Positions 1 to 41,968 of a stretch of 64,000 bases of DNA are shown piece by piece (position 1 is the stretch's first letter; the number at the start of each line of letters is the position of its first letter). This DNA comes from Octopus sinensis (Eukaryota): NCBI RefSeq assembly GCF_006345805.1, contig NW_021836291.1:248001-312000 (forward strand), given 5' to 3'. The notes under the pieces are model-generated. The model ran no database searches. It was given only the letters and a program-made list of their open reading frames with translations, and was not told where the DNA came from. A program made the position numbers and the translations under genes.

Positions 1-387
1 GGGATCTTAATCCGAATAACGTTTTTTGGTCCTGTAAAAGTGGTATTAATAATAAGAATTTCAAAGAAATATTCCCCCAATGATTAGAGGTTTTTGATAG
101 AATATTAATTATTTGAAAAATTTATTCGATATTTTGATAATGGAATTTTTATATTAACTGAATGCTATGTTTACTGAAAGATTGCGATTTATTTTGCGAA
201 GGGAAAATTGACATCTAAAAAAGTGAAGGAAACATAAAGGAGTAGCTAAATGCTTGTATTTGCAGCTGTGGAATAATTTGGAATCGGAAAGGCCAAAAAG
301 CTCAAAATTAATTTAGTCCAAACTCTTGCGGCCAATGAGTTTGTCTGAATAAAAAAATAAAATAATCAGAGTTTTAATTTCCTAGAC

Positions 388-765
388 TTTTTTTTTTATT
401 TTACAAACGAAAAGAGTTAAAATGCGCAGCGGATCGACTGGCAATTCCCGCGCATGATGGCCAATGAGATCCTTTGAAAGAGTCTGATCGACTCGTTGGG
501 ATCTTTCGTGGCAACCACGAGCTTAGATCCAAGGCGGCGGAGAAACGATAGCGTCTGCGGGCCGATGACTCCAGAGGTTTCCACCGCGACTGCAGTGAAT
601 TGGTGATTCTTTGCCAGGACCCGGTACTTCTTCTGTTTTGTTAGTTCCGCCTGCTTTGCAACTGAGCCCGGTTCCGCAGCGGAGGCAATTAGATTCTTGG
701 CGGAGAAAGTGTCGGAGCAGGTGGCGTCCCAGATAAGAGAAGGTCCCTAGATTTTAGCAAATTCG
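388..765 (-). mobile_element. CRE-like (RLE) non-LTR retrotransposon, 3' fragment
   Basis: Minus strand reads SLIWDATCSDTFSAKN...AVETSGVIGP...FQRISLAIMRGNCQSIRCAF*, the PD-(D/E)xK C-terminus of CRE-clade elements. A-rich tail appears as the T-run at 388-402 on plus. Homologous to 25592-25954. Confidence 0.8.
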
Positions 766-859
766 GGTAATGCAGAAAATGTGCGGTTGTGGAAGAGAAG
801 GAAAAAAAATGCTATGCGGCCGCAAACCCGAAAAGCTTGCGCACCCCTCTAGAGTCTAG

Positions 860-1870
860 ACAATGAACCCGAAATGGAGATCGTTGCTAAAAGTTTGCAT
901 GACTTCTCGCATGGAGGAGTTAACAAAATTGAATATGAATGTCGACAACGATATTTCCCAGTTAAAATGAGATTATTCGAAAAGTCATTCGAAACTGTGA
1001 AATTTGTAAATTTGCGCGACCCTTAAAAGTTTTAATTTTTCTAAATCCTAGATTGGGAATATAAATAACCATGTCTTTGCATCTTGCCCAAATGAAAGAT
1101 TTCAGATAGATCTTATAGATCTGAAAAGTTTTTCTACTATAAATAAAAATTTTAAATGGATTTTAACGGTCATTGACGTATATAGCAGGTTAGTTTTTTT
1201 TAACAATTTTTATAGATTTGCATTTGCGAGGCCGCGCTACACTGAGTCCTCAAATGAAGTTTGTGAAAACCTCAGATCATTATTTTTCTTAAATGGTCCG
1301 TGTCAATTTCTTCAGTCCGATAATGGGACTGAATTCAAGAATCGTGAAATGACCAATCTATTTGAGGAATTCAATATCAAACGAATTCACGGAAGGCCAA
1401 ACAATCCCCGCTCACAAGGGATTGTCGAAAGCTTCAACCAGTCAATTACAAGAAAAATGGCAAAAATGATCGACAATGATAATAAAAAGTGGCTGGAAAA
1501 ATTAGAAAATGCAGTGTACAGTTATAACATTTGTGTCCACTCATCTTCTAATGAGAGCCCTTTTGAAAGATACCGGGGAATAAGTGGAATAAATACAATA
1601 TTTTATGGTTGTAATTATAAAATTATTCCTTAGATAATTCAAGTAATGATTTGTTGAGTCCTGATCAAGTCGATGATGCAAACAATTGTCCGAGTCCAAT
1701 TGAAAATTCATGTAATTTGAATTTCTATATGTAGATGATTGTAATTATTCGTTTACAAGTCCAAAAAGATTTCAGTTCGAAATCAACCCCATTGATCCTA
1801 ATTCTAATTATTATTTTATCATATCTGGGACGCCACCATCCATTCTTTTTCCAACATACAAACAACATTG
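860..1870 (+). mobile_element. Intron-containing rve integrase with HHCC domain (Ginger/KRBA2-SCAND3-like), probably pseudogenised
   Basis: HDFSHGG...CEIC zinc domain, then PNERFQIDLID, IDVYSRFAF, SDNGTEF and PRSQGIVESFN (DDE). Continuity is restored by GT-AG introns at 1029-1051, 1189-1215, about 1608-1633 and 1712-1734. One frameshift near 965. No RT, gag or LTR seen nearby. Confidence 0.8.
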
Positions 1871-1888
1871 ATTTTTATCACTATATTT

Positions 1889-4346
1889 TATTTATTTATT
1901 TATTTATTTACCCCCGGCCCCTTCAATTGAAGGAAGCCGGTGGCTAACAAGAACGTTAGGGCCAATGTCGGACGCTCCCAAAGATCCCCGATCGTGATCC
2001 GGTGTTCCGAGGAAGTAGAAGGCGGGCCTGGACAGGAGAAAAGGTCGTTGAGGGAATAGGAAGGGGTTATTTCACCAAGACCGATTTTTATGCGATAATC
2101 GTGTAGGCCAGTATGGTGGCCACAGCGGAGACGAGCCAAGTTCACTCGGGCTTCTCTTGAGAGGGAGGATTCGATCTTATTAATTGGCGGCGGAAGGCGT
2201 CCCAGAAGCTTGTTTATTCCAAGACATCTGATTGCCCTCGTAGCCACCAGGTCGTGAATCCCCTTCTGGTTAATGTCCGGAGGGGATCGTATAAGCTTGC
2301 GGACTTTGTCCGCGAGGGTCGGAACTATTCTCCTGTTGTTAGTGGAGTGCCAGAGGAAGTAGCCAGGGTGATTTAGGGTTCGGCATTTGTCAAGAAATTG
2401 CAGCCCGAGCATTTCAAAATGGTCACTGATTGGAAGGATTTTCGATTCCCAATGTAGGTGGTCGGTAGGTGTCGTTTTTAGACAGCCGGTAATAATTCGT
2501 AATGCTGAGTTTTGAGTTCTCTGAAGTTTTTCAAGGTTTGTATTAGATAAGCAGGAACCCCAAGCAGGGATGGCGTAGTTCATAGTTGTTCTAATAAACT
2601 GCTTGTATACAGTTGTTAGACTTTCCTTATCCTGCCCAAATGAAGTCCCCGCAATAGCTCGGAGCACATTGAGTTTTTTCTGGGATTTTCCACAGATATA
2701 TGAAACATGTTTCGAGAAGGACAAACAGCAATCAAATATCAGACCCAAGATTTTGGGGGATTTTTCAACTGGGAGTGGAGTGTTGTCTAGGAATAGTTTA
2801 GGCTCTAAGTTGAACTGACGGCGGTCAGTTGTGAATAGCGTAACAGATGATTTGGAAGGAGAAGGTTGAAGAAGATTGCATTTCAGCCAGGACGAAAGAG
2901 TGTTCATGTGTTCCTGCAGAAATCCAGAAGCGGTGATTATGTTTTGGTGGCGGGAGGCAAAAATTAAGTCATCAGCGTAGGAGAGAAGTAGAGTATTATT
3001 GTTCGTCGGGATATTTGACAGATGTAAGTTAAATAAGGCAGGTGAAAGGACCGAGCCTTGGGGAACTCCGTTAGGCAAGTATTTGTAGCGTGAGTAAGAA
3101 GACATGATTGTGGTGCGACCAAGACGCCCAGAGAGAAAAGAGAGTAGCCATGACTTTATTTGGTGGGGGAATTCCGTATCGGTTATTTTCCTACACAGAA
3201 CGTGTCTTGACGTTCTGTCAAATGCCTTTTCAATGTCGATGGATGCAATAATTGTTCTTTGAGGTGGCTTATGATTGTTAAACCCATCCGCAATGAATTG
3301 TGTCAGTTTTGAAAGATGGGTGGAAGTGGAATGCAAAGAACGAAAGCCATGTTGAGATTCAGCAAATGGGAGGAAAGGTTTTATGATGCTCAATACAACT
3401 CGCTCTGTTATTTTTGAAACCACTGAGATCAAAGAGATAGGTCGAAAAGAGGAGGGGTCAGAGGTATCACGATTTGGCTTTGGGATAGGGATGATGGTAG
3501 ATTTCTTCCAAAGCATAGGAACCAGACCATGGTTGATCGAGTATTCGATTAAATTGGTCAGAGCCAGAAAGCCATTAGGACCCAGATTTTTTAGGTGGTG
3601 GATGGCAAGGCCATCAGGACCTCTGGCGTTAGAATTCCGCGAGTTAACAACAAGTTGCCTGGTAAATGATTCTGGGATGTTAATATAGTCAGTAGAATTG
3701 TCATTTGACTTATAATGTGTACGACTACCAACGCCACAATCCTATTCTAATCAAAATAAACCATCACCCTGTAAAGAAGAGAATTACGAAGACCTACATT
3801 AACTACAAACGGAAATGGGACTCGTTCAGGAGTGAAACTGAACGTATATTCAGTAATTTTTCTTGCTCTCCACTCAATCATTTGACGCTGCCGTTGCTTT
3901 CTTACTAGTACACTTCTTTCTGCGGACAAAAAATTTATTCCCCGCGGCTTCATCCGAAATCACGGCCTCCACTTCCCCCACCTATCATTGAACTATTCAA
4001 AAAACGAAGGAGGATCAAATCGACGACTTCTATCAATGGAAATGGAGAATCTCTAGCAGAAATACAACAAAAATTGACGAATAATCAAGAAACATAAAAC
4101 TGACGAATGGAATGATTTTATCACTTCAATAACCCCAAATACTGGATCCCGTGCTTTCTGGAGAACCCTCAAGAAAATTCACACGGGCAAACATGTCCCC
4201 TCTCACATGCCACCGGTATCTCGACCAAAAATCTGTCCTATCTTTCCAGGATCAAGCCAACATCTTAATTCGCCATTATGCAAAAATCAGTCACCTTCCT
4301 ACCCCAAAGGATCTCCGTTTCGTAAGAAAATCACATTATAAGTCAA
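1889..4346 (-). mobile_element. I/Ingi-group-like LINE, 5'-truncated with 5' inversion, 12-bp TSD
   Basis: 538-aa RT ORF 1900-3516 (QHGFR, DIEKAFD, PQGSVLSP, YADD, RLRCGH) that extends upstream to 3719. (TAAA)n tail at 1889-1910. Upstream linker is on the plus strand at 3720-4348. TSD ATCACTATATTT at 1877-1888 and 4347-4358. Confidence 0.92.
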
Positions 4347-7242
4347 ATCACTATATTTATGATTCATCATCCCATTTTTTTCCAACATACAAACAGAAAA
4401 AATTTAAAATAATATATACATTATTTGTTTACACTTTTATTAAAAATAATTATATATAATTGATTAAATAAAAGGAATTTAAAAACCACGTGAAATTTAA
4501 TGTTTTGTTGATGAAACAAATCAAAGTCAAAAATCCTAAAAATAAAGGCGTGTCAAGATCTAAGAGAAAAAAGATTGGAAAATTATTCCAAAAACACATG
4601 TATTTCAGATTTAACATTTCAGCCCCCTTCGTACGAATAAAGATTGGGAAAAAATTTATTCCGACAAGTCACTCTACGGTAAAAATGAGACCAGGCCACT
4701 GTTACCAACAAAAGTTGGCACAAAACTTTTTCAACGATTTATCCAAGTGGAGATTCCTGAAGAAAAGAAACCCAAATCAAAAATCCATACAAAAGAGAAT
4801 AAAAACACTCAAAACATTTCCAAACTCCAAGATTTCAGTTTTGAAGAATTTAAGTCATATTTAACCCACGTGGAAACTCTCGTCATCTCATTTCCAATAG
4901 AAAATGTTAAATTCATTTAAATTCAAAATAGATTTTAAAATTTTCACAATTTTTGGATTTTCTGAACTCTTATCCACTCGACGGTGAAAAAATGGAAGCC
5001 ACTGTCAACTCACTTTATGAAGTCTTGGTTGATCTCACTCCGGGGTACCAGTATAAGCCCACCATCCACAAGAATCAGACTCGGGTCTTATAATTTCTCG
5101 TATTTAGTCAGCTTAAAAAAGAGACACTATCACAGTGTCGATACGAATCTGATTTTTTGTCGATTTACAAAAGATTTGTGGATTTTCTCATAAAAATGTC
5201 AAGTCTCACAACAGATGACAAATCGTCGGTTTTTTGTTTAACAAAATTGTCTGAATTGATGCTTTCAAATGGACATTTCAACTTTTTTGAGACCGTCGTT
5301 GAGTTTTTTGTTCGAGTTCTTTCTTTTAAAGACGAGGTACTTGATTTTTATATTTTTACTACCAGAAAAATCACATTGCATATAATGCGTTGGCTAAACT
5401 GCTGATGGAAGATCAGTTAGGAGAAATTAGTCTTAAAGTCGTTTCCGTCGTCTCCGCGATTTCAAAAAACGCGGGAGTTTTTTGCAAGGAGGTTTGATGC
5501 TGTTTTATTGGTGGAGATGGTGACTATTTTATTCCATGTCAAGATTGATGAAGAACTCAGTCTTCGTGCTTTGGATACTCTGAAAGGAGCCGATGAGTGT
5601 GTTGATAGAAGAAGTATGTCTAGAAAAGAGCGGAAAGTTGTCGGTTTCAATTCATATTTAGGAAAATCGAGAATTTCGTATTTTGGAAAAGGAAATGCGT
5701 CATACGGAAATAAAAGAGAACCGAGAAAGAATTTCCGAATTAGTATTTATTGTTAAATCAGTCAAAGCAAGCAAAAATATTGCAACAGATTTTCTACGTT
5801 CTTTTTAGAATTGTCCGAAAAGAGCGGGTTGAGGCTGATTTACTCTCTGCCGTGCTATCAGGTCTTTCCAGGTTTTTCTAAAGCATTGAAAGCTTAGATT
5901 TGCTGGTTACATAAATATTGAGATGGTCCATGATTTGCTGCAGCATTTTAAAAAAATGTTAAATGAGGTTGATTGAGATGATGATCTCAGAATGAATTGA
6001 GTGATTTAGACAAAATAAATATAGTGCGGACTGCCTTTGTGATCACAGCTGGCGGGGAGGTTTCACTCAGTATAGAACAAAATACATTCCTCCGTGGGCT
6101 TAACGAATCTATCCAGTCCGTTTTGGGTTGTTTGTTTGGCAATATTCGCAGGATCTAACGAGGATGTAAAATGTTTGATTGACTGTCTTCAAGTCGTTGT
6201 CTCTCGTTGTTGCGGACAGTTAAATAGTACTCATATTGAGGGGATATTGGGGAGATTAATATCCACCTGCATGTACTCTTCTCCTTCTGTAGTTTTGACT
6301 TATTTTGACATTGCGAAAAAATTTATAATGGTTTGAGTTGTCTGTGGATTATTGTAGAGAGGGGGAAGGGGAGTTATGAGAAGACTAATGGGAGAGGCTG
6401 TTTATAGTTATACAAATGATTGCTCACTCGAAGGGGTTCTCTGGCAGTTCTCTTTTTTGAAAGTAGACTGGGTTTGAATGAGTTTAGAAACATTTTGCAG
6501 TTGATGTCTGTGATGGAGTTGATGGAATTTTATCTTTGATTGATGGAAAAGTGCATCCTGCGAATTTCAGAAATAACACTGTTGTCAAATCTGCTGGTTT
6601 GGACGAGGATTGTGAATTGATGATGAGGGGTGTGGAGAAACCTTTTCCAGTATCTCGAGTTTTAATTTCATGGTACATTTTCTAGGCAAAGTGGAATGGT
6701 TTTATGTCGGAGGAGTTTTCTCGTTATTATCGTGATATTCAATAATATTTTGAATAAATTATTTTTTTTGTCATTCAAGCTTTAGAAAAATATCGATTAT
6801 CAGTTAATTATTCATCTTCTTGTAGTATTGATTATTATCGCTAATCGGTTGTATTTTAAAAGTAAAAGATACTTTTAATAACAGTTCTTAAGATTAGTTA
6901 AAATTTGAGACTTTTTATGCATTCGAGCATCAACAAAAATTTTTTTCTTTTAATTTTTGACATTGCGAAATTGGGTCAATTTATGTATTATAGCAATAAA
7001 CTGAATATTCAAGAATTTGGACAATTTATTTTTTAGGTTACTTCAACTTCGATAGTGATCTCATAACATTTGATTAAAGTGCTCAATTATTTCCCCTAAA
7101 ATATTTTTATTCCTTAAAATAACCTGTGATTTAAGATTATTAGATCTGTAGCAGAATTGTTAAATTATGGACTTTTCGAAAATCAGGATGTCTGTATTTT
7201 TTAATTCTGTAGAATCTCAGAAGGACTATTGAGATAAAAAAA

Positions 7243-7741
7243 GGTACTTTTGCATTTCATCCTGCACGAAAATAGCCACTAAATGAATTAAGGAAAATTT
7301 TTATAAATATTATATAGAAAATTTAAAAATTGAACTATGCCGATTTTGTAAATTTTATTCTAATTTTTTTTAAAAAAGTGGTGTCAAAACAATACCGACA
7401 AAATTAAATCTGAGCTATTTACGACCACCTGTCTAAAAAGACACAGTTGTTCGTTAATAAAGATGCTTAACATCATCCCCTCAGTGAAAAAATCTTTATT
7501 ACACAAAAAAGGTCAGCTGGTAGTACGCATGTATGGCCGCTCCATTCCAGTTGACTCCGACACCATAAAATACTGTGTCTGTCGAAACTCCACATGTACA
7601 TAAAGCGAATACATGACTGTAAGGTCACTTTCGTGCCTTCGAGCCACGTACCTAAAAATAAAGTACTCTCTTGTACCGTTTCTAATAGAACATTAATTCA
7701 TTTAGTGGCTATTTTCGTGCAGGATGAAATGCAAAAGTACC
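7243..7741. mobile_element. MITE / internally deleted DNA transposon with 49-bp perfect TIRs (Merlin-like)
   Basis: TIR GGTACTTTTGCATTTCATCCTGCACGAAAATAGCCACTAAATGAATTAA at 7243-7291, inverted at 7693-7741, flanked by A-runs. The GGTAC start fits the GGNRM Merlin consensus. Internal remnant ...DSDTIKYCVCRNSTC... resembles a Merlin/IS1016 N-terminus. Superfamily is inferred. Confidence 0.75.
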
Positions 7742-9572
7742 AAAAAAAAGGGGCTCGAGATTTTTAGAAACCTCAAATTTATTTATTAGTGACCTAGCAA
7801 AAGCAAAACTAAGATAATTATGATCATAAAACCGATTATAGACGTCAATAACAAATAAAATCAATTTTTATTCTCCGTTAACTCTTTCAAATCTTTTCAG
7901 ATCAATAAGGTCAATTTAAAATCGCTCATTTGGACCAAAGCGAAAAACATGATTGGTTTTATCTACGTTTTAAGCCATTAAAAAACTTAACTTGAAGTAG
8001 AAGTAAAAACTTGCAGACATCGCAATGCCGAGGATAAAAGATTTTAATTTATTTGACCCCTTCATGAGATATTAGAGGGAAAGAAAAAGCATAGGTCTTT
8101 CCATTTTTGACAGACAGACCAAGGGAATTACTAATTTTTAATTTTAATTTTCAAATAAAGCCTTTAGATTAAAAAAGATTAATACTTATCCTTTTTGGCA
8201 AAAATGGGAGATCCTTCAGCCAATCGTAAAAAGCAAGCTGCCCATGTCACATATTGTGCTAAATTGTTTTCTGTATAGCTGGTAAATGAACAAAGAATAC
8301 TAATTTCATTATATACAAAAGTGGAGACCTTCATCACCTAAGTGCCTTTTAGTCTTAGAATAATATTTTCTTCAACTATCAAATGTAAACTACTTTTTAA
8401 GAGCAAAAAAATCTTTGGTTTTTTTGGAATTGAATAGATACTTTCTGAAGTTCAGCATTTCAGGGTAGTGAAAGGGGGTTCCAGAAATCTGATTTTATGT
8501 CAAAATATTTTAAACCCTTTTGAGATATTTGCACATTAAGCTCGTAAAAAGTCAAATGATTGCTCTCAATATCATCAAGATAAACATGTTTGCAAATCTC
8601 ACCAATTTTTATTCTTTTAATGTCGACAACATAGAAATGGCTTTTGAGTATGAAAAATTACTATCTGAGATTCAGCACGTATCTAGCATCCATTATTTTT
8701 TTGATTTGCTTTGTCTCCCAAATTCTCCTTATATATCTAGTTCCTTCGACTAGTCCATTTCAGATAAGACTGAATGTATTTGTAGATTTTCTCTTTTTCT
8801 GTAGAAATTTCATGATCAAACAGTCAAGGATATGATCATTCAGACTAAGCTTAAAAGCTAGTTTAAGCGTGACAGTGACTCTGTTCAGATTTTAAGACGA
8901 TATTCTGATATTGCTTAAATTACTATCAGGCTTCTAGTCCAAGTAAAAGACTTGAAAAGATAACTGTTCTTCCTTTTCTCAAAAATGTCGAGCTGATAAT
9001 TTGAAATCCAGGTACCGGATTTACGACAAAAAGTGCGTTTTAATATGTCTCAGGCGCTAAGCATTACCGAGCACTACGAATTACTCGAATGGACTTTGAA
9101 AAAATCAAAAAAATACTTGAAAGTTTATTTTTTTCAAATTAATATACTTAATTTGATCAAACACAAAAACAAAGTTATTAACAAGAGGTTTATTGTTACA
9201 AAAGATAGTGGATACAAATTTAAGCACCAGTAGTACACATTTTTCGTGACACGTGGTATTTTGTCTCTCAGATTCACGCCAAAGGTTATCTTAAATGGTA
9301 TTCTGTTCATTTTCTTCAGTAATTTTATGATTCTTGCTTTTGAGGGGGACAAGATTCACTATTCCAACCCATACATCAGCACTGGAAAAATAGCTCTTGC
9401 TCGGAAAATAAATAGCATAGTTTCCGGGGGTAAGCGAAATTTGATTAGGCACATGATCATTTGTGTACACCGTTGGGGATAATTTCCTGCTTATTTTCTG
9501 AAAATTGGACTCACAGGTACAGAAATATGGTAAGGTTTTTGCCTTTCTTTCTACTCTAGTGAGCATGCACTT

Positions 9573-10130
9573 CTATATTGACAGAGTCAAGTAATTTAGT
9601 TTCATTTCCGACCTCGTGGGGAGGGCTGCCTCGTCCCTAATAAGAGTGTAATTGGCATAAATAAGCACGTTCGTTGAGATACACACAGGTTTTAGGAAGT
9701 CAGCTATATACACGTTAAACAATAATGGGCTGAGGACTGAGCCCGGGTGGTAATCCTCTTCTTTAAAAAAAGGCTCTCGAATCTGGGCCAAGATAGTTGA
9801 AAAAAGAGATCCTCTGACTCAAAAAACTCATTAGCCATTCAATTTCATAATTTATAAGATTTTTCAGGAAGACGGAGTGACAGACACTGTCAAAAGCTTT
9901 CGAGACATCCAAACAGATAATACAGAATCCCGTGCCTTGGATACTATGGAATTCAGTTGATAGATAAAGAAACCAAAGGGCCGAGTCTCAGAATCAGTAA
10001 TCGGGCAACGTCTCAATATGCTTGTGTAGTTTGCTGAAGGTGGCTCCGGTAAAGAGGCAAATGAATCTGGTCCAGAACAGTTTCGAGTTGATTGCGGAGA
10101 AGTTTGTTAGTTTCCTCTTGACTGGACAGG
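9573..10130 (-). mobile_element. Degraded LINE reverse transcriptase fragment
   Basis: Frameshifted motifs CIICLDVSKAFDSVCH (about 9890-9930) and PGSVLSPLLFNVYIAD...LIYAN. Confidence 0.7.
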
Positions 10131-11003
10131 TTCAAAACCCAGTATGTATTACTTTTTAACATCTCTCAAAATTGAAATGAATGGTTTAAAAAACTCATGA
10201 AACGTTGATACTCATGAAACGTTGATACAATTGAAAACCCTTTCATAGATTACTATTTTTTTCCAAATTGATTAAACTGATATAGATGATACAATTGAAT
10301 CAATAAACAAACAATTTAATTACACTAAAGTTTAAGAGTATAATTTAATAAAAAGACTCTTTTTCTTTTATGAGTGTATTCATGAGGATCCACCCAATTA
10401 CTATCTTCTTTTCGACAGCCGGACTCGCAATTTTGTGAACATATTTAGTTTCGCGCTTTTCCAATCAATCTGTGGAAAATATTATTTTCTCAATTCGAGT
10501 TCTGATCCTATGTTAATGTTTGACGGTAATACTTTCAATTGTCTTCTTTAGTACTAATCATTGAATATATTCCTCATTTGGCACATCAATCGATAATGCA
10601 TTCACATGGTTTTTGAAGCATTTCGAAACAATTCCACTCCATGTCAAACCAAATCGAACAATTTTTTCAGGAACATTGCATAAAATTTCCAATTCACTAT
10701 CTAGCAAGTCATACTTGTATTGTTTTTCTACCTCAGTCTGTATGAGTGCTTCCTATGACGTGATCCAAACTTATATAATCACGATCTCCATCTTGAGAGT
10801 TTGAACTTTTTTATATCATACATTCTAAATAAATAAAGATTTATGCATCTAACAACTTTGTTATGTCTTCTCATGTAATCACTGGTTAGCATTCGGTTCC
10901 TCGTGTGGCCAGATGATCAACGGATTTCTTGGTCTTTTGTTACAGTCCTTCAGTTATGGTATATTAATAATTTAAAGTCAGAATTAAAAAAATATAATAA
11001 AAA

Positions 11004-11075
11004 AGGTTCCACCGAGATTCGAACTCGGGTTGCCGGATTCAAAGTCCGGAGTGATAACCGCTACACTATGGAACC
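11004..11075 (-). tRNA. tRNA-Gln (anticodon TTG)
   Basis: GGTTCCATAGTGTAGCGGTTATCACTCCGGACTTTGAATCCGGCAACCCGAGTTCGAATCTCGGTGGAACCT. Complete cloverleaf, anticodon stem CCGGA/TCCGG, followed by a T-run terminator. Confidence 0.95.
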
Positions 11076-11085
11076 TTTTCCCTAA

Positions 11086-15479: not shown

Positions 15480-18400
15480 GTGTGCATGTACGTTTTCAAG
15501 AAGTCAAGGAAAACGAAACCTATGGGCCTTCCTGCAAATCAAAATAGTTTAAAAAAGACAGGACCGTCGCCTGTGGGACTTCATAATGCCATAAGAGCTA
15601 ATGGTGTTAAAGAAGATCTTGTTGGTGATGTTGCCAAAACTAACTTGCATTCTCTTTCTGCAATCATCGGAAATGTCAATGGTGTCTCTGAAGGCGAATG
15701 GGTGTCTCAGATTGTCCTTGACAAAAGATGATCCGCCCCAAGATATTAATCAAATTACCGATATTCTATATGCTGCATAGTTTGCTTATTTGGCCTTAAC
15801 TACGAGAGCCAGATCACAGAGCACATGGTTGGAAAACACGGAAAGAAAAATCTCTAAATTAGCAGATGAAATTGACACAGTTCGTTTCTTCTCCAGACAA
15901 ACCTTGCCTCAGGCAGAAAAGCAAAAGGCAATGAATGTTCTCTGCCGCTACGGATATAAGAAGTCTAAGAAGGGGGAGCTAACCAGAATTGAGACTCTAT
16001 TGAATGATCTAATTAGAATAAAAAAGAAACAGATATCTATCCATTCCTCGAGGAAGGATTTCCGGAAAGACAATGCGTGTTTTGAATTAAATCGCAGAAG
16101 ATTTTATCGAAATTTATCTTCGAGCAATGAAGCCACCCTATATGGGTTTGGTGATGGTGATTGCTTGTCATTTTGGGAAGATGTCTGGAGCAAGAAAAAT
16201 ATGGGGCCGTAGTTAATGATTTTGTGGGTTTGAGGTGTACTGGCGGTGAAACTATGCGACCTCAATTCACAAGTGATTTTATTATGGATATGCTCAAATA
16301 CGCATCTGACTGGAAGGCATGACGGAACGTATAACTTTTTCTTAAAGAAAATGGATTCTTTGCATGGGTTTCTGTGTAAAGAGTTAGTCCGAATAATTAA
16401 CGGAGAGTACACGCCTAATAGCTGGTTTACACTGGCATAACTTACTTGATCCCTAAAAAAAGTGGTTGTGAGACCCCGAAGGACTTACGCTCTATAACGT
16501 GTATGCCAACTTTGTATAAACTTGTCACCAAATGTGTTAATGCCAAACTGCCCGATTTCATCAAGGCATTTGGCTTAATCTCAGATAATCAGCTCGGGAT
16601 GAGGAAGCAATGTCAAGGCGCCAAAGAGCAAGCCCTCATTAACCAATGCTTAAATAAGAAGTATGGAAATGGCCTCTATTCTGCTTGGGTCGATGTGAAG
16701 AAGGCATTTGACTCAGTTGATTACGAGTACTTGTTCCACGTTTTCGATTGCTTTGGAATACCACATTAGATTGTAAACTTTGTAAAGAACATAGTCAAGA
16801 AGTGGACAGTAAACTTACATATCGATGGGAAAAGAATTGGGAAAGTAAAGTTAGGCCGGGGAATACTCCAAGGAGATTCATTTCCCCGTTGCTATTCGTT
16901 ATGGCGATGGATCCCCTAAGCAGGATGCTTAACTCCATGTTTCCCAAACTCAAAATTAGTCGGGAAGATCCCAATATGTTGACATACTTCACAAATCATT
17001 TCTTCTTTATTGACGATCTGAAAATAGTTGCCCTCATAGAAGATGTGCTAGTTAAAATGATGGAGGCTGTTAATGGATTTTTTAAAAGTGTTGGCCTAGA
17101 GATGAATTCCGAAAAATCAGCATCTAATGTGGAATCTTTATCATGCTGTGAGACTGTGGATGGAATCAACGGATATCAGTACTTGGGTGTACTTGAAGAC
17201 GGCGGAAGTAATGTTCTACAAGAATAAAGTTATGGAATCCATACTAGAGAATGTCAAGAAGAGGATAATGCATTATCCCTATATAATTATTATATCAGGC
17301 TAATCAATATCGAACCTTACGAATTTGATGAAATTGACCAACAAATACGCCGATTACTTACGATTTTAAGTTACACCTCCAGCCTGCAAATAAGGAGAGG
17401 TTGTATTTGGACCGCAAGACGCTTGGAAGAGGACTTGCCTCAATTTCGCCAAAAGCGAATTAATACTCTTCCAGTTTCTTAAAAGTTTGGAAAAACAGTC
17501 GACTACCTGTTTGCGGAGATCGGGTATTTTGCGAGTAATAAAAAGAAAAAAATGGCACTTAGCCACAATCGCAGAATTTCTTGGCAGGGAAAATCTGACC
17601 ATTGAGTTACTGAAGGACGCACAAAGGAAACTCTTGCTTAACCGAATCAACTGTAAATCACTATACTCGGTGATGTTCAAATGTATGGAGGAATCAGATG
17701 TCTACATATCTACTTCTTTGCAATGGCTATCAAAAGAGAACAATGGTCCACGAAGCGAAGCATTGTACTGTCTTTTGCAAGATAGGAATTTGTTCTTTGC
17801 ATACACGGGATCACTATGCGTCCACTGCAAAAAAGCAGGCAGACTGTTGACCACCTAGCCACGCAGTGTGGTAGGATTCTAAACAGTGATTATCTCCAAA
17901 GACACAACGAAGTGGTAAAGTGTATCCATCTCCACTTGTGTCGAATGTATGGAATTAAACGAAGCAGGAAAATGAAAGGACATTCAGTTGTGTCAATAAT
18001 GTCGACTCAAAATGTCGAAATCAGAGTTGACACGTCAATTATTATTATTATTTATTATTATTTAAGCCAAAAAACAGAATCACCGTCTTAACCATTTACT
18101 AACGTGTTCAGGTGATTCCGACACTTCTCAACAGTCGAGCCATCTTTTCACGATGTTCAGACCGTGACCCCACACACTTTCTGTATGTACGGTGAAATGC
18201 TTGTGGTCCATCTCCACGATCCCTCCCACTTGCCTCTACAAGAGACTCCAGTGTTCGATGGACAATTTTCCTGTCGGTATGGTCCTTCAGTAGGTTTATG
18301 GATTTTTCTTGGATTTTCTCGATTTTTAGTTGGTTCGTTGCCGCCAGGTTACAGCCCCAAGCAGCACATGCATAGCCTATTGTTGGCTCGATATACTGCT

Positions 18401-19135
18401 TGTAAAGGGTCTCTACCCCTGGCGGACAAGTTCTTCCACAGTTCCAAAGAAAGGCTTTCACAAAATTAATTTTCTTTATACAAGTTGACACGATCGATTC
18501 AACATGAGGTGAAAAACAGAGGAAAGTATCAAACGTTACACCCAATATCTTCTGTGTTTTCTATGACTGAAACGTAAGTTCAATTCAATAAACCTGATAT
18601 TTTTGTTTATGACAAGAGGAAAAGAGAAATTCATTTAATCGAAGTGGGAGTTACCTCGCAAGACCGTTTAAAGCAAGTTGAAGTGGAGAAATTTCACAAA
18701 TACGACCTCCTTGCAAACGAACTGTAGGTTCTCTATGAAGCAAAAGTGAAGATTATTCCAATTTTCTTGACATGGGATGGAGTTGTCTCAAAGTTCTTAA
18801 AAAGTCATATGAACAAGTTATCCGTTGAAGAACATCCAGTCCGTTGTGCTGAAGAGGACGCTAGAGAGTATGCTTATCGAGCACAGACATGGGATGAAGG
18901 TAGACAACAAGGAATACGCCTCTGCCGCCAATCAATTTGCGGAGCTGGCATGTCGTGAGGACACTCAATTGAATAAATTCATTGACGAGGAAATAGAGAA
19001 TGAAAGAAAGTTTATGGAAAACTCTTCTTCCAAGCGAAGAAGAGAAATCACTGAAGATCTGGATTTTTAACTAGCTACTTTCACGTGATTGTTTTTCTTG
19101 TTACATGTTTGTTGTAAATGAAATAATAATAATGA
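15480..19135 (+). mobile_element. R4/Dong-like RLE non-LTR retrotransposon, near full length, degraded
   Basis: FELNRRRFYRNL, ITCMPTLYKL, QGAKEQALIN, WVDVKKAFDSV, GILQGDSFSPLL, FFIDDLK, CCHC (CVHCKK...HL..QC), RHNEVVKCIH, KPDIF, KYDLLANEL. Many frameshifts. Confidence 0.9.
18041..18562 (-). mobile_element. 5'-truncated LINE 3' end nested in the R4-like element
   Basis: ORF LGVTFD..LCFSPHV...LYKQYIEPTIGYACAAWG with a (TAA)n tail at 18041-18063. It interrupts GACACGTCAATT/ATGACTGAAACG, which is contiguous in the sister copy near 54693. Confidence 0.85.
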
Positions 19136-19559: not shown

Positions 19560-19900
19560 TATGTTTGATAATTTTTTGTCAGTGAATGAGTTTAGAATAC
19601 TACTGTAGGATGTCCTGGCGTGTTTTTGATGTTCCTTTCAGGGGTTGATGTTGTCGTGAGATGGTTTTTGATAATACTCACTGAGGCGGAAATTGGGTTC
19701 CTGGTGCATATAGTTAGTCGTGTAGACTTTATAAAGCCGTAATGATTTTGAGTGCTTGGTTTTGAATTGATGTAATTTCTGAAGAAGTTTTTTGTCAATA
19801 TGGGCGCCCAAGATAGACTAGAATAGTTTAATGTTGGAAGAATATATTGTTTTTATAGGAATGTTAGGGATTCTTTGTTTTGTACAAAGTCGGTTCCTGT
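19560..19900 (-). mobile_element. LINE 3' fragment (same group as 1889-4346)
   Basis: GTDFVQNKESLTFL*KQYILPTLNYSSLSWAP aligns with GTSFGQDKESLTTVYKQFIRTTMNYAIPAWG. Confidence 0.7.
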
Positions 19901-20349
19901 CAGTGAACGGAGAGCATTCATTTTATATCTCTGGACTTGTGCGCGTGATTTCGTCAATTCCTCGATGGATCCGCAATGTGATGGTGTCCTAAATTGACTC
20001 CGCAGCAAACACCCCCATGCCCCTGCTAAATTCGTGCAATACTGAAGCTAGATCCGGTTCTGTCTATTTCGATCACTTGCTATTTCCGTCATTCTTCTTT
20101 GTTCACATATTGTTACGGATGCGATTCTAACCGTTGCAAGATAGCTTTTTTTCTCTGCTGGGCTCATTGCCCTGTCGAAGGTCGAGGGTGGCATTACGGT
20201 CGGTAACGTCTTCGGGAGACTCTTTACCAAAATAATTTCCCACAAGGTCGTTTCCTCTCTGAGTTTAAGTTCTTTCTCTTCCAGTAGGGTGTCGGCGTCC
20301 AACGTTCCTGCGAAATACTTGCGCACGGTACTTGCCGACTTGCCCAGTC

Positions 20350-23674: not shown

Positions 23675-25086
23675 CAGTAAAACCTCTGGTGCTCGCCATT
23701 TTCGGGACCGAAGAAAAAATGGCGAGCAATAGAATTTGGCGAGCAATGGAAATAATCAATAAATTTTTCGACTTTGAAATTTTGAAAACATCTCGGTTTT
23801 TGATACTTTCCTAAGTGAACCTTCCAAGTCATATTAAAGCAAAGAAACAAAGAGAATCAAAAGAAATTAAAAAGAAATAATTAACTAAAAATTATCAATT
23901 TCAACAGTTGGTCTTTCGAGTTGATTTTCACATTCGATCCATTTTGAATGTCCGAAACAATTTGTACTTGTTTTGGTCGTTACTTTTTTCCAGGCAAAAT
24001 ATGCAAAAAGAAGACCGTCTTTTAAAGTTAATTTTGTATGAGCTTCCAGTGGATTTTCTCCATTTTCAATTTTTTCTAACATAAACTCAAATTTAAGTTT
24101 ATTAAAATGTCCTTTGAAGGATCTAATGATTCCTTGATCCATTGGTTGTAGAATTGTTGTAGTCTTCGAAGGTAGGTAAAGAACTTCAATTGACTCTAAA
24201 TCAGCGTAAAGTTTATGGGATGGGCATCGATCCACAACTAAAAGAATTTTTTGTTTTTTTAGATGCCTATCCCATGTTAAAAGCCATTCGTTAAAAATTT
24301 TACTTGTCATCCATGCTTTTGGTGAATGACAGTAATCGACAAAATTTTCGACTTTAAAATTTTTAAAGCAGCGAGGTTTCTGGAACTTTCCAATCATAAG
24401 TGAAATTTTTTTGTTTGTCCCAGCCATATTTGAGCATAGCAACAAAGAAAATCTAAAAAAATAAATAAAAATTAAACCGTTTTTTAAGGATTTTATGTCC
24501 ATATCGAACCTTCTGACAAACACTTTTTGAAGGGATAGATTTGTAAAAAATCCCAGTTTCATCAGCGTTATAAATGTTTTCAGCATTATATGTTGAATCT
24601 TTGCAGAGATCAATTTCTTGTTTCTGATCAACTGCAGCTCATGTATTCCATCCAAGTTAATAGTTCGGTGTCAATAACAGAATAAGTTAAGTTAGATAAT
24701 CTCTTCTTATTGGAGAAAATAGGATCAGTAGACAGTATTTTCTCTTTTCCAAGTCTAAAATCGTTTCTTCAAAACAGAAGAAAAAATGTAAGCTATACGG
24801 TCCATCGTGAGATTTTTGTTCTCCTCCATGTACGCAATAATGCGACGTTTTTATTAAAAGACAATCTTGTGCTCTTACGCATGTTGAATTTAGCATGGTT
24901 GAAATATTTTATATAAAAAATAGTTTAACCAAAAAATATTTTTAAAAATTAATGGCGAGATTTAGAAAATGGCGAGCAAAAGAATATTTATCAAAATTTA
25001 CTAGAAATTTTTAATTTTTTGGAAAATATGTGGCGAGCAATAGAGGTGGCGAGTAACAGAGGTGGCGAGCACCAGAGGTTTTACTG
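23675..25086 (-). mobile_element. pogo/Tigger (DDE_1) transposon, internally rearranged, with a 25-nt intron
   Basis: TIR CAGTAAAACCTCTGGTGCTCGCCA at both ends with TA TSD. Reads IYNADETGIFYK...GHKILKK|RFSLLLCSN (intron 24453-24477), VVDRCPSH, LQPMDQGIIRSFK. A second paralogous transposase scrap lies at 23740-23850. Confidence 0.92.
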
Positions 25087-27190: not shown

Positions 27191-27377
27191 GTAACTGGTG
27201 ATTCAAAAGAAGACCGATAAAGCTAGAACGATTAGCCAAAAGCAAGAAAACATAGCACATTTAAACAGGGAAATTTCCAAATTCAAAGCTTGTCTCGATG
27301 AACTAAATCTGCAAATTCAGAAGGTGAAAGCTATTTCAAGAAATTCCCGGCAACCAACTCCTAAGATCCATAGCAAC

Positions 27378-27572
27378 CTATAGCCTACAACACGCACATT
27401 CAGGTTTCATCGTGTAATCCCAGAGGATGATGTCGTCTGCATATATCACCATTTCAGTACTAGCATTGAGTGGCATGGGGGCAGAAGCCATAAAGACATT
27501 AAACAGTGTGGGACTCAGCACAGAGCCCTGAGAGACCCGGCGAAGAACTGTTGCAACTTTAGAATATTCCAA
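27378..27572 (-). mobile_element. Isolated LINE RT fragment
   Basis: VSQGSVLSPTLFNVFM...IYADDIILW. Confidence 0.8.
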
Positions 27573-27619
27573 GGGCCGTAGCCTTCTATTGCTATTACAA
27601 AACCGAAATTTTTTCTTTG

Positions 27620-28310
27620 GAAAAAAGATAGAATTGCAATCATTGTAAATCTGTCAAAAACAGTCGATCATTTGGCAACGAAACGCAATAGGGTGTTAAA
27701 TAGTGACTACATAAGACGACACAATGAGGTGATAAGATGTATTCATTTAAATCTGTTTAGTAAATATGGAATCACATATTTAAAGAAATTGAGAACTCAT
27801 TCAGTCCAATCAATAGCAACAACTGAGAATGTTGAGATCTGAGTCGATACACGCTAATGACGGATGTCAAAGTACAGCATAACAGACCGGACACATTTTT
27901 TTGATAAAAGGACAAGTGATATTACTTTAGTAGAGGCTTGAATCACTTCTCAGGAAATTTTGAAGGTGGTTGTGATAGAAAAGCTTTACAAATACACCTT
28001 GTACAACCTCCTCCTTGGAGTGTTCTCTTAAATATACAACACAGAAGTTAAAATTATTCCTATTTTTTGACCTAAGAAGGAATTATAAGTAGATTCTACA
28101 ATTTTGAAAGAATGTTAGTGAAGCATTGACATGGGATTACTTTCAAGAGAGTAATGTTAGTGAGGTCATTCATTTCCTACGACGAAAGTCTCTGCGAAAA
28201 ATTAAAAATGACAGAATCATGCTCATTGACAACAATGCTGGAATGAAGATCAGATTGGTGGTAAGAAATAATTCAAAACGAAGAAAAATAAATCAATACA
28301 ACAATCAATT
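27620..28310 (+). mobile_element. R4/Dong-like 3' fragment
   Basis: CNHCKSVKKTVDHLATK...YIRRHNEVIRCIH...HNRPD...EKLYKY. Confidence 0.85.
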
Positions 28311-35816: not shown

Positions 35817-36059
35817 TGGGGTAATTTTTACAACTGGACTTTAAAGAGTGATTTTATTACTAACACGAAATGTGTTCTGTTAGTTTTTGAAACTGTTTGA
35901 GTTATAAAGAAAAGGAAAGTCGTGGTTTATTTATGACATTTACTCTGGCAGCACCTGCTCATTCCCTCTGAAATCACTCATGGCTACTTGGCGAATGTTC
36001 GAGGATAAGTGGCTTTTATATGCCGAAATTTTTTTTTAATTATTAAAAGACAGTTAGAC

Positions 36060-37330
36060 AGTTATATGCCGACAATTGTTCTACGGACCAAGATATTCCG
36101 TTTGGCAGGAGTCGAGACGTGGAATTCAAGCGTCCAGAGCACACTCTTCCCCTTCGTCCACTTAGGAGGTTTGTGATCTATTGTTTGAGCTTCGGCGGAA
36201 ATTCCGTCAATAACTGTAAGTATAAGGACGTGGACTTCGCTTTCTTGAATCCATGTTGAAAAGGCCTTGCAGGTAAAAATTTTTTTATTCATCCAAGAAC
36301 CATCCTTTCGGGAATTTTTGACATGAAGCATGACAGGGAAACCGACCTGAAAGATGCCAGGTCGTCTCTTGGTCTTCCAGGTTTCAGTATCGGCCGTATT
36401 AATGCCTGTTTCCACAATGACGGAATCACATTATGGTTGATCGAGTAGTTGAAGATAGCCGTTATAAACGTGACTCCTTCGACACCAAGATTTTTTAATA
36501 GAATGACCTAAATTTTGTCCGGGCCGTGAGAGTACGACGTTTTTGTGGAGTGAAAGATATCCACCATCTCATTTACTGAGAAGAGGAGAGGTTCCTACGG
36601 TTTTTTAGGCTTCTGTTTGAGGGATTCCGATTTCCTGTGCTCCTTGTGTGCTATTTTCGCATAGGATTTGATGAGGTTGTTCACGTCTTTTTGATCATAT
36701 TCTTCAGCAGTTTCGGTAGCGTCGCCCTTGGCCACGTTCCGAATGGCTTTCCACACTGTTCCCGTTAAACGATTACGGTTCACGGCTGTAAGGATCTGAT
36801 TCCATTTCAAACAAGTGTGTCTGCGTTCATTAGTCTTCAATGATCTTATACGGATCATTATATGGAATTTATTCGGTTGGATTTCTTGAGGTGATTTTTT
36901 TTCCTTGGCCAGGGCGGACCTCCTTTGACTACAAGCAGCATAAGGTTGGCGTTTGGGTATAGCCATTGGTTTTGCTTCCAGAATAATCTTAGTGAAGAAA
37001 CCGATTGCCTTGTCGAGAGAGCTAAAGTTGTACAGATTGCAATTCTGTAGTTTCAAATTCAAGATATCCTGGAACCATGGCCAGTTCACCGTATTATAAT
37101 TGTATGGAACACGGACTTTCCTGGTAAATACTTCCCTTTTGATCTTCACCACGATCGATTTGTGGTCGCTTTTTGTTTTATAGAGGACTGATCAGTCCGT
37201 AGTCGATACGAGGGCTGAAGAGCATAGAATTACATATGGTAATGTAGGCTTATCAGTCACTCTGAGTGGAGTCCTTGTGTTCCTCGATGGATCATTCAGA
37301 ATTGTTGAGATGTCCAATTTGATCCCATTG
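36060..37330 (-). mobile_element. Degraded I/Ingi-group-like LINE (APE end, linker, RT start)
   Basis: KSDHKSIVVKI, VNWPWFQ, HGPDKI, NYSINHNVIPSLWKQALIRPILKPG, FQHGFKK. Same group as 1889-4346. Confidence 0.85.
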
Positions 37331-38073
37331 ATGTTTAGCTGGAGAGCTGTGAAGTTTTTTCTACTTTTCTGGGCTGCGGAAAAGTTTTAAAGATTTTTTT
37401 CCGGTGGGCATTAGATTAAATCGAGTTGATAAACTACAAAACTCCACGTTTTATAGTGTATAATCCATTTAATGGAAATCCAATTAAATTTTTCCTTTAC
37501 AGTCGATTTATTGTTGTATTTCTCAAAATAAATTAATTATATGTTAGTTTACGAACTAGTCAACAGTTGTATACAGGGACCAAATCAATTTGGGTTGGTG
37601 GTTTTCAAATTTGATTACTTTTTATAGCTTTCCATGTAAAAAGTCGAATTTTGTTTTTCGACAGAATACAAAACCTATTACAACACCTAATGCACCAAAC
37701 ACTAAAACAAATAGTTGTGCTACTAATACTCATCCCACTGAAATGTCTTTCAATCAAAAAACAGTACAAAAAGTAGGGATCAACAGATCAAATCGCAAAA
37801 ACGACTGGAACTTGAATACGAACCACGATTTCGTTAATAATTCTGTATTTATAGTTATTAGTTACTTTGTTTTCTTGTTAAAAATGATTTCAAACTCAAA
37901 ATATCACAATTTGAATTTAATAAATATTTGACAGAGACAGAGAGCAAACAAACACTCTTTCTTTTAATGTAGATTTACGGAATTACAATTGATTTATATA
38001 ACTTATAAATAGTTATTGTTTGTTAAATTAAAGTAAGTTTAGAAATAATATTTTTAAAACCAGACCTCTTGTT

Positions 38074-39020: not shown

Positions 39021-41968
39021 CAGTGAAACCTCTCGAATCCGCTGCTTCTCGAATCCGCCGCTTCTCGAATCCGCTTGTTTTAATCAAAAATTTGAAATTT
39101 CCTATGAATGATTCTTGAATCCGCTTGTTTCTCGAATCCGCTCCTCAAGTATTATGAAAAATAATTTTTTATTAACATTTTAAAATTCTCATTACACGTT
39201 AAATTGTATTTTTGTGATGCGTCGTTGTGTTAGACCAGGCCTGGCCAACCCAAATCGCATCGCGGGCCACTTTGTCCAAATGAATCCTTTCCGCGGGCCG
39301 CATATACATGTACATACTAAGGATAGATATCAAAACAACACAGATAAGATTTTATTTAGTAAAATAGCATTCAGTCCAATTATACGTATCAATGAGAAAT
39401 CTGTTTTTCTTTATCTTCACTTAATTTTTTCAAATCAACTTCACAATTACTAGTTGCACATCTTAATTGGTTTTCTAAGTTTTTATCTGTTAAAGAAGAT
39501 CTATATCTACTTTTACTAAACTTTAATTTCGAAAAGAATGATTCACATATGTAAGTAGATCCAAAGGAGCTTACAACTCTTTGTGCAAAAATTCTTAAGT
39601 TGGGATATTTTTCTGCAGTCACATATTTGTTATAAAAGTCAATTTTGGATATAGTAGGATAAACCTTAGTTCACTGTTGCACTGTAGGTCAATTATTTCC
39701 GTCTGCAAAGTATTGAAACAATAGAAACGTCAACATGAAATGGAGAAGAAAATGTTTCAAACATTTTCTCATATTTTTTTAGTTCCGAGAATCGACTGTC
39801 AAATGCTGCAGCAAGATTTTTTATTTCATCAGCGTACTTGAAGAAATTTTTACAATGGCTGATTTTAAATTGATTTAGCGTTGGAAAATGTTGATCATTT
39901 CCATTTCTTATTTGACATTCAAACAATGACAATTTCATTCGAAATGCTTTGACTTGATGGCATGCATTAGTAATCAAATTATCCTGTCCTTGTAACTCCT
40001 TGTTTAATTGATTAATTTTTCGGTTATATCTACCAAAAAGCACAGATCTAGCATCCATTCTTCATCATTTAATTCAGTTAATGTCATTTTCTTATGCATC
40101 ATAAAACTTTTGATTTCTTCTCTCAAGTCGAAAAAACGTTTTAAACATTTTCCGCGACTCAGCCATCTGACATTGGAAAAATACACAAGATCACCATAGT
40201 GAGAATATAACTCGTTCAATAATTCTTTAAACTGGCGATGTTGAAGTGCATGAGAACGAATGAAGTTTATAGTTCTTACAACCACACTCATAACATGGTT
40301 CATAGACAACACTTGCGCGCACAAATTGTGTTGATGTATCAAGCAGTGTATTACAAATAAATCATTTTTTATGCTTCTTGACTCCATCTCATCCATTATT
40401 AGCTTTACAACTCCTTTATTTCTTCCAATCATAGCCGGCGCCCCATCTGTTGTCAATCCAGCAAGGGTCTCTAAATTCGCTCCATTGTCGGATAAACATT
40501 TCATAACAGCTTGGAAAATATCTTCGCCCTTTGTAGTATCTTTCAAACTGACAAGGTTAAGCATTTCTTGTTTCACTTGAAAAGATTCGGTAACTCCACG
40601 AATATATACAAGTTGAGACGTGTCTGATATATCCGTGCATTCGTCAAAGGCCAAAGAATAACTTTTGAAAATTTTATTTGATCACGCAAAGTCACCACAA
40701 TTTCATTTGAAATGTCATTAACCCTGCGACATATGGTTTGACGTGACAAGCTAATGTTTGAAAACTTTTTAGTTTTATCTGGCAAAATGTCTTTCACGAC
40801 AGCATCCAAACACTCTTTTACGAATTCTCCATCCGAAATGATTTCATTCTCTTTGAAATTATCATTGCAACAGAGTAGCTTGCTTTAACAGTATCAGAAG
40901 AAGAGTGTATCGATGAATTTAATAGTCTTTGCTGATTTCTCAATTCAGATTTAAGCGAATCCAGTTTCCTTGTTTTCAATTCCTTACTAAATTTCGCGTA
41001 TTCGGAATGCTTTGTTTCATAATGTCTTCTTACATTGTACTCTTTCACCACCGATACTTTCTCCTTGCAAATTAAACATGTTGGCTTGAATTATGCATTA
41101 TAAAAAAGTAATCTTTTCCCAATGATTGCTGAATTGCCTGTTTTCTTCAAAAATTTTCCTTTTCTTCATATTGATAACAGCTACAAAAATAGATAAACTT
41201 TAAAATTATTAAACTTATAAAATTTATCTTTATTTATTAAACTTAAGAAAAATTTATCTTGAATGTATTTATAGGTTAACTACATACAAAATTTCTCTCG
41301 CGGGCCGCACCAAACTCCATCGCGGGCCGCATGCGGCCCGCGGGCCTTGGGTTGGCCAGCCCTGTGTTAGACTTTCTATCAACGAAAAAATTTCTATACT
41401 ACGTTATATTTCTGACAACCCATTTGTTTCTGCACCTCAAATTTCCAATCAGTTTAAATGAAACAATCAGTTTAAAAACTGAACAATATGGATTGGACAA
41501 TGTCCATAATTCAGATGAAAGTGGTGTTTTTTACAAGGCGATTTCTTCTAAACATGTGTGCACTAAATCAAGGCCTGGAATAAAGTTATCGAAGGATCGA
41601 TTTTCTTTACTATTATGCGCAAATTGTTCTGGTTTCCGATAAAAGAAGGCCTGTAATGATAGAAAGATTCAAAAGTCCAAGATGTTCTAAAAATTTCAAC
41701 ATTGGAAAATATGTTACCTACACCATTCCAATAAGACTTGCAATAGATAGATGATCTCTAAAATATTATGCGAATTGAGGAAATGTTATAAAATTTCTGA
41801 TAATTTGAATATAAATAATTTGTGTATTCAGTCATTTGTATATAAAAAGAAATATTTAATCTATATTGTAAGTTCATGTTTCAACTATAAAATTTTATTT
41901 AAATTGCCTCTCGAATCCGCCGATTTTGGGACCGACCAAAAAATCGGCGGATTCGAGAGGTTTTACTG
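39021..41968 (+). mobile_element. pogo/Tigger non-autonomous element (host of the hAT insertion)
   Basis: TIR CAGT(G/A)AAACCTCTCGAATCCGC with TA TSD, repeated TCGAATCCGC subterminal motifs, remnant VHNSDESGVFYK...KLSKDRFSLLLCAN. Confidence 0.9.
39236..41364 (-). mobile_element. hAT transposon (GTF2IRD2/SPIN/Buster-like), frameshifted
   Basis: 16-bp TIR CAGG(C/G)CTGGCCAACCC, perfect 8-bp TSD TGTTAGAC (39228-39235 and 41365-41372). Motifs KEYNVRRHYETKH, FDECTDISDTSQL, TTDGAPAMIG, HCLIHQ, VRWLSRG, FGSTYICESFFS. Confidence 0.96.

Follow-up and report, generated by a model that had tools for sequence, protein, structure and literature searches.

In a 64-kb stretch of Octopus sinensis DNA (contig NW_021836291.1, positions 248,001 to 312,000; the whole of this stretch is called the window here), a 5′-truncated long interspersed nuclear element (LINE) is divided into two arms which lie on opposite strands and meet at their 5′ ends. 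The copy very probably derives from a single retrotransposition of a non-L1, endonuclease-type LINE that was settled by twin priming, the process by which Ostertag and Kazazian reportedly explained 5′-inverted L1 insertions in 2001. Its sequence carries all of the hallmarks of this process: one pair of target-site duplications surrounds both arms; the sense (3′) arm ends in a tail next to one duplication; the inverted arm consists of the part of the element that lies immediately upstream, and its 3′-most position stands at the 5′ duplication; the two arms overlap at the breakpoint; and the 5′ junction shows microhomology and no filler. A second copy with the same architecture, from a related family, is found in another contig (L009). 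The preliminary description of this DNA had proposed twin priming in a non-L1, ‘I/Ingi-like’ element, and of this proposal the mechanism is upheld by the hallmarks and by the second case, while the clade label is not. The features of both copies are collected in Table 1.

Table 1. Features of the window copy, its matches to the full-length homologue P0001, and features of the second inverted copy (L009; positions in its own contig).
Sequence	Feature	Position	Strand	Basis or remark
Window	Target-site duplication, 3′-tail side	1877-1888		Exact repeat of 4347-4358, ATCACTATATTT
Window	Microsatellite 3′ tail, (TAAA)5 + TA on the element strand	1889-1910	minus	Direct reading
Window	Sense (3′) arm: linker end, reverse transcriptase, C-terminal region	1911-3719	minus	One open frame, 605 codons
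Window	3′-terminal hairpin CCGGCUUCCUUCAAUUGAAGGGGCCGG, directly before the tail	1914-1940	minus	Fold
Window	17-nt stretch, sense-arm copy	3703-3719	minus	Reverse complement of 4332-4348, 17/17
Window	Inversion junction, 5′ ends of both arms joined, no filler	3719-3720		Homology switches strand
Window	Inverted (5′) arm, 629 nt: last endonuclease-domain residues (HNPILI) and linker to reverse transcriptase	3720-4348	plus	Profile positions 224-428
Window	17-nt overlap, copy closing the inverted arm	4332-4348	plus	Equals 3703-3719 reverse complement
Window	Target-site duplication, element 5′ side; first two bases AT are the microhomology	4347-4358		Exact repeat of 1877-1888
Window	P0001 residues 317-361	3735-3863	plus	tblastn
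Window	P0001 residues 385-475	3931-4200	plus	tblastn
Window	P0001 residues 466-523	4172-4336	plus	tblastn
Window	P0001 residues 540-1133	3663-1930	minus	tblastn
L009	Target-site duplication CACAGTAGAAGT, 12 bp	2508-2519 and 5810-5821		
L009	Inverted arm	2518-3956		Reverse complement of L010 2573-4023, 98.1% identical
L009	Sense arm	3952-5812		Equals L010 4216-6076, 98.9% identical, then (CAA)n tail
L009	Element sequence lost between the arms			192 nt
L009	Inversion junction			2 nt microhomology (CA)
L009	5′ junction			Last GT of the duplication agrees with the element after one mismatch

Collinearity of the two arms

Two rulers were used to place the arms, a full-length homologue, P0001 (1133 amino acids, aligned by tblastn), and a profile of 1032 positions built from 49 full-length relatives. 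Both confirm the arrangement given in the preliminary description, with one arm on the minus strand from 3719 to 1889 and the other on the plus strand at 3720-4348. On the profile, plus 3735-4351 corresponds to positions 224-428 and minus 3711-1933 to positions 424-1028 (681 bits), and the two arms are therefore consecutive parts of one open reading frame (ORF), which overlap by about five profile positions, i.e. the 17 nucleotides that are found in both. The orientation of the inverted arm is equally specific, as profile position 428 (4348-4351) adjoins the 5′ duplication and position 224 (3735), on the HNPILI side, adjoins the internal junction.

The rejoined protein gave 5,485 protein matches at E values up to 1e-10, the best of which is 42% identical with 98-99% of the query aligned and derives from a TARA Oceans metagenome scaffold; the 538-amino-acid ORF had no record in the assembly index. 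In the best relatives, endonuclease (PF03372, PF14529) and reverse transcriptase (RT; PF00078) are joined in one protein of about 1,000-1,170 amino acids. Collinearity across the breakpoint, which the preliminary description had wished to see confirmed on a family consensus, thus holds at the level of the protein family, at the 42% identity of the best relative.

Repeats and junctions of the window copy

The 12-bp duplication claimed for the whole unit is present, ATCACTATATTT being identical at 12 of 12 positions on the two sides, and neither a script nor a repeat finder located it anywhere else in the 64 kb. Its length is exactly 12, as the bases that follow differ (T on one side, A on the other). 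Likewise, the 17-mer CACATTATAAGTCAAAT is shared by both arms without a mismatch and recurs nowhere else in the window on either strand, and when plus 3720-4348 is joined to minus 3702-1889 the frame runs unbroken through ...VRKSHYKSNDNSTDY..., which is the continuity that had been described. For fixed positions and the base composition of the window, the chance of the 12-mer match is about 3.5e-7 and that of the 17-mer about 4e-10. The inverted repeat runs on imperfectly to 23 nt at 91% (3697-3719 and 4332-4354, by repeat finder). At the 5′ junction the dinucleotide AT (4347-4348) closes the 17-mer and at the same time opens the duplication, again as first described, giving 2 nt of microhomology and zero filler bases. 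The structure had been called ‘fully resolved’, a wording that is slightly too strong, because any microhomology at the internal junction (3719|3720) can be read only against a family consensus.

The sense arm ends in the bases TATTTATTTATTTATTTATTTA, which lie between the left duplication and position 1911 and form the (TAAA)n tail when read on the minus strand. The stop codon of the ORF (1902-1900) falls within this tail, and the ORF runs through the hairpin before it. The fold of 1889-1965 on the minus strand has an energy of -25.3 kcal/mol (z = -2.8), and none of 200 shuffled sequences folded as well; in a relative (L001) there is a short hairpin at the matching place, but the 73-nt stretch that contains it has a z of only -0.66 and was equalled by 49 of 200 shuffles, so that the comparison does not demonstrate a conserved hairpin. 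The combination of hairpin and (TAAA)n tail resembles that of LINEs whose RT recognises the 3′ end.

The RT domain of the sense arm is recognised by Pfam (RVT_1 at 3486-2740, E = 4e-33) and its YADD motif is intact (2979-2968). The C-terminal CCHC knuckle is destroyed (about 2030-2060, minus strand), an in-frame gap of eight residues having removed the CxxC and the histidine having been replaced. The coding sequence of the inverted arm is spread over three frames (frame 3 at 3735-4094, frame 1 at 3892-4200 and frame 2 at 4214-4351), with four frameshifts in all.

The sequence into which the element inserted is itself repetitive. Positions 1834-1886 and 4365-4417 belong to a tandem duplication of about 61 bp that is imperfect (74% identity over 53 nt) and older than the insertion, and an exact 19-mer, TTTTTCCAACATACAAACA, flanks the LINE on both sides outside the target-site duplication. 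The possibility that this 53-nt flank repeat is a long duplication made by the insertion itself was considered and rejected, because the order of its parts differs between the two sides.

A second inverted copy in a related family

Contigs were fetched for those relatives whose called product held RT only, and were mapped with the profile of the 49 relatives. Among some 13 copies inspected (L001, L002, L009-L016), L009 alone is inverted, the rest being collinear or 5′-truncated. L009 is a 145-kb contig of ENA sample ERZ26222911. Profile positions 3-367 map to 3809 to 2499 of its minus strand and are immediately followed by positions 412-1028, which map to plus 3917-5758. A contig from the same sample, L010, carries an intact, collinear copy of the L009 family that is 98-99% identical, and L009 can hence be read against a reference at the nucleotide level, unlike the window copy, which has no such reference.

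The reference element is itself well delimited. It spans 2495-6074 of L010 (3580 bp) between its own 12-bp duplications, ACCCGTGCCAAA, and a paralogous, uninterrupted empty site at 10-1648 of the same contig confirms that the duplication is 12 bp long. This LINE sits in a repeat of at least 1.6 kb (2305-2494 together with 6075-7532, the other copy being 10-1648), and the repeat itself contains a 5′ fragment of a related LINE.

The protein of the window family and that of the L009/L010 family are about 37% identical. L009 arose by the same process as the window copy, in a related family, and the generalisation of twin priming beyond mammalian L1 is strengthened by this second case.

Among the other contigs, L011 (1-6500), L012 (689-5521) and L015 (690-6484) contain several related LINE copies, arrayed head to tail on one strand over a few kb, which suggests clustered or nested insertion in those genomes.

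Proposed course of the insertion

The geometry of the product is seen directly, and from it we infer the individual priming steps. The endonuclease would have nicked the plus strand of the window after ...CTATATTT, whose T-rich 3′ end could pair with the (UAAA)n stretch that ends the RNA, priming a first complementary DNA (cDNA), extended for 1.83 kb to the base that is now at 3719. Cleavage of the opposite strand 12 bp away would have freed a second 3′ end, ...ATAGTGAT-3′, and this end may have annealed at ...AAAU|GACAAU, either within the RNA already being copied or within another transcript of the family, by way of its terminal AT and with six of eight bases matching overall; the stretch 4332-4348 would mark the internal priming site on the RNA. 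From there the second cDNA would have been primed and extended over the next 629 nt of upstream element sequence, as far as the point where the endonuclease-coding region ends. The first cDNA would meanwhile have copied 17 nt beyond the second priming site, to which the overlap of the arms can be attributed, and host repair may then have joined the two cDNA ends head to head without filler.

The resulting copy is dead on arrival, because the endonuclease is absent, the front part is inverted and the linker is frameshifted. Twin priming predicts that full-length copies of the family carry an uninterrupted ...AAGAAAATCACATTATAAGTCAAATGACAATTC... at this place.

Alternative explanations

Several observations weigh against an origin of the window copy by twin priming. 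No second copy of the window family was found, either in the window, where blastn returned self-matches only, or among proteins, where the best match has 42% identity, and a 20-mer spanning the junction hit only six loci in the JGI metagenome contigs (L003-L008), all of them chance matches of 20-23 nt. For this reason, the argument for collinearity draws on distant relatives, and the internal junction is unscorable. The pairing proposed for the second priming site, target ATCACTAT with element ATGACAAT, agrees at six of eight positions, which is not significant alone (about 0.07 by estimate). In addition, the four frameshifts of the copy are all confined to the 629-bp inverted arm, the 1.8-kb sense arm being free of them, an asymmetry that has P = 0.0044 if indels fall evenly and about 0.02 if they are weighted by homopolymer runs, which are 1.8 times denser in the inverted arm than in the sense arm; it is not predicted by a simple model with one RNA. 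Repeats are also error-prone in assemblies.

The frameshifts are unlikely to be homopolymer sequencing errors, none of the four zones containing a run of five or more identical bases. When the two arms were compared for their load of substitutions, the profile score ratio was 0.13, as against 0.22-0.26 in intact relatives, but the four frame breaks by themselves depress the score of the inverted arm. The insertion looks young by the identity of its duplication copies and of its overlap copies, so the frameshifts probably predate or accompany it; they could stem from a template that was defective, from the use of a second one, from error-prone synthesis or repair, or simply from chance. More speculatively, the second cDNA could have been drawn from a different, defective RNA, or its synthesis could have been of lower fidelity. 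A variant of twin priming on two RNAs, in which the sense arm came from an intact transcript and the inverted arm from that of a decayed family member annealed to the second target end, fits four frameshifts in one arm and none in the other of a young insertion; it is nevertheless unlikely, as the 17-nt overlap is identical in both arms, and chance or an indel-prone sequence could account for the frameshifts. The second case tells against it too, as L009 is without this asymmetry: its inverted arm shows no excess of mutations (15 substitutions and one indel in 1451 nt, against 20 in 1861 nt for the sense arm; Fisher p = 1).

Explanations that dispense with twin priming fare worse. That the structure is an assembly artefact, either a misjoin or an inverted collapse in which the reads of two family copies were mixed, is very unlikely in spite of the repeat problem noted above, for such an error would not yield a perfect 12-bp outer duplication or an arm that ends in microhomology with the target, and the window offers no second family copy that could have caused the confusion. 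A shade less probable still is an ordinary 5′-truncated insertion whose first 612 bp were later inverted at the DNA level between short inverted repeats. The 17-mers at 3703-3719 and 4332-4348 are indeed inverted repeats that bound the flipped segment, but if the inversion were undone, a 17-mer in antisense would be left over between the element and the 5′ duplication, where it would call for a special origin of its own; moreover, the overlap consists of element sequence in the correct register, the 5′ microhomology and the geometry match priming by the target end, and L009 has the same architecture with a 192-nt gap between its arms, hence no inverted repeat that could have recombined. The least probable account is that two insertions of the same family landed independently side by side in opposite orientation. 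Nested or adjacent LINE fragments are common, and the window holds at least eight other LINE fragments, but here the plus-strand piece lacks the 3′ end and tail borne by every target-primed insertion and stops at an internal position, the pieces are exactly consecutive apart from their overlap of about five profile positions (17 nt), and a single pair of duplications spans both, neither piece having a pair of its own.

Clade of the element

The window element is clearly not an L1. Its tail is (TAAA)n and not poly(A), and the match between human L1 ORF2p and P0001 is no more than remote (E of about 1e-17 to 1e-15). The ‘I/Ingi-like’ label of the preliminary description is not established either. 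I and Ingi elements carry an RNase H domain as a defining feature, and downstream of the RT no RNase H is seen in the window copy or in its relatives: Pfam finds nothing but RVT_1 in the window copy and no RNase H among the 120 best relatives, and no RNase H was detected up to E = 1 in P0001, P0005, P0103, P0110 or the C-terminus of the window copy. Duplications of 12 bp were found in all three copies measured (the window copy, L009 and L010), a length that is typical of the I group and does not define it.

Judged from domain content and architecture, the element may belong to Vingi or to the PHD-bearing subgroups of CR1 and L2, both of which are candidate clades. Vingi is said to have been described by Kojima et al. 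in 2011 as a sister of Ingi that lacks RNase H and has a single ORF with endonuclease and RT. Elements of the group studied here likewise combine endonuclease and RT in one ORF, lack RNase H and are about 3-3.5 kb long, and the likeness is one of architecture only. In L001, for example, an ORF of 3402 nt (54-3455) occupies most of a contig of 3545 nt. Vingi elements measure about 3.1-3.5 kb (Vingi-2_Gav, 3128 bp) compared with about 3.5 kb for L001 and L010.

An N-terminal PHD finger is present in the ORF of P0005, P0103 and P0110 and is undetected in P0001; the 5′ part of the window copy, where it would lie, is missing. A single ORF with N-terminal PHD, endonuclease and RT has been described for L2 subgroup 4 and CR1 subgroup 6 (Metcalfe and Casane 2014, PMC4120745). 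Like these PHD-bearing subgroups, the group lacks RNase H and, in the window copy, has a microsatellite tail after a hairpin; unlike the L2-clade element ZfL2-1, with duplications of about 5 bp (PMC4245944), it makes duplications of 12 bp. The tail sequences vary within the group, (TAAA)n in the window copy being replaced in relatives by (CAA)n, (TAC)n or (AGTTCA)n.

Other features of the window

The window as a whole is transposon-rich, AT-rich eukaryotic DNA (about 34% GC). Decayed fragments of related LINEs lie at 9423-9966, 18225-18611, 19574-20038, 27348-27686, 36052-37386, 44693-46345 and 63453-63832, each on one strand, and profile mapping revealed no inverted arrangement among the other LINE fragments of the window. 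A near-intact LINE of another kind occupies 51521-54063 (plus strand), with an ORF of 652 amino acids, in which endonuclease- and RT-like motifs are recognised by eye, followed by one of 188 amino acids; its look is RTE-like. Further ORFs were assigned by eye from their translations: an integrase-like fragment at 1349-1633 (plus), a pogo/Tigger-like transposase at 23885-24655 (minus), a hAT-like ORF at 40004-40654 (minus) and a DnaJ-domain ORF at 49682-50221 (plus). The sole match of the Rfam and tRNA scans is a tRNA-Gln(TTG) at 11003-11076 (minus).

Significance and comparison with known systems

Twin priming had been described beforehand as known mainly from mammalian L1, and this is borne out by the literature inspected, nearly all of which concerns mammalian L1. 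The only non-L1 inversion in the open-access literature searched, which earlier reports may add to, is an insert of zebrafish Nimb-2_DR (Nimb clade, I group), where one insertion in about 30 was 5′-inverted in chicken DT40 cells (PMC4245944). In the same comparative cell-culture study, ZfL2-1 of the L2 clade gave no inversions in culture, inversions were said to depend on L1 and on the host, and inversions were found to go with duplications of 10-20 bp (PMC4245944). The mechanism is a known one, and what is new, by the open-access literature searched, is to find it in this LINE group; the advance is a small extension of that mechanism and rests on two copies.

Two natural non-L1 cases show that second priming can do without L1 proteins and without a poly(A) tail, and their 12-bp duplications agree with the proposed role of overhang length as the factor that permits it. 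From one case in each of two families it is conceivable, although we would put it at somewhat below an even chance, that single-ORF, microsatellite-tailed LINEs with 12-bp duplications regularly undergo 5′ inversion through twin priming. If true, this would speak against the conclusion from cell culture that L1 and human host factors are required for inversions, and would support a rule by which a 3′ overhang of at least 10 nt permits second priming. There is also a practical side, in that annotation pipelines which stitch the halves of inverted L1 copies together should be extended to other LINE clades, as such copies are otherwise counted twice.

The closest parallels are the 5′-inverted L1 insertions of human, chimpanzee and mouse, which share with the window copy a single pair of duplications, an inverted arm of upstream sequence and a small overlap or gap at the breakpoint. 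Microhomology at the 5′ junction is seen in 95% of 5′-inverted L1 copies and is 2-5 bp long in about 70% of these instances, the duplications measure 10-17 bp and filler is rare (PMC2912911); the microhomology at the 5′ junction here falls within the range of 2-5 bp, and filler is likewise wanting. At the inversion junction, microhomology is frequent in L1 but not obligatory, and in L009 it amounts to 2 nt. Unlike L1, the group described here has a single ORF of about 1,100 amino acids, elements of about 3.5 kb, and a microsatellite tail with a 3′ hairpin. Nimb-2_DR is, like the window element, a non-L1 LINE, and its duplications peak at 12-13 bp compared with 12 bp here. It differs in having two ORFs and in having been observed in a culture assay, whereas the copies described here are natural genomic insertions from two families with a single ORF.

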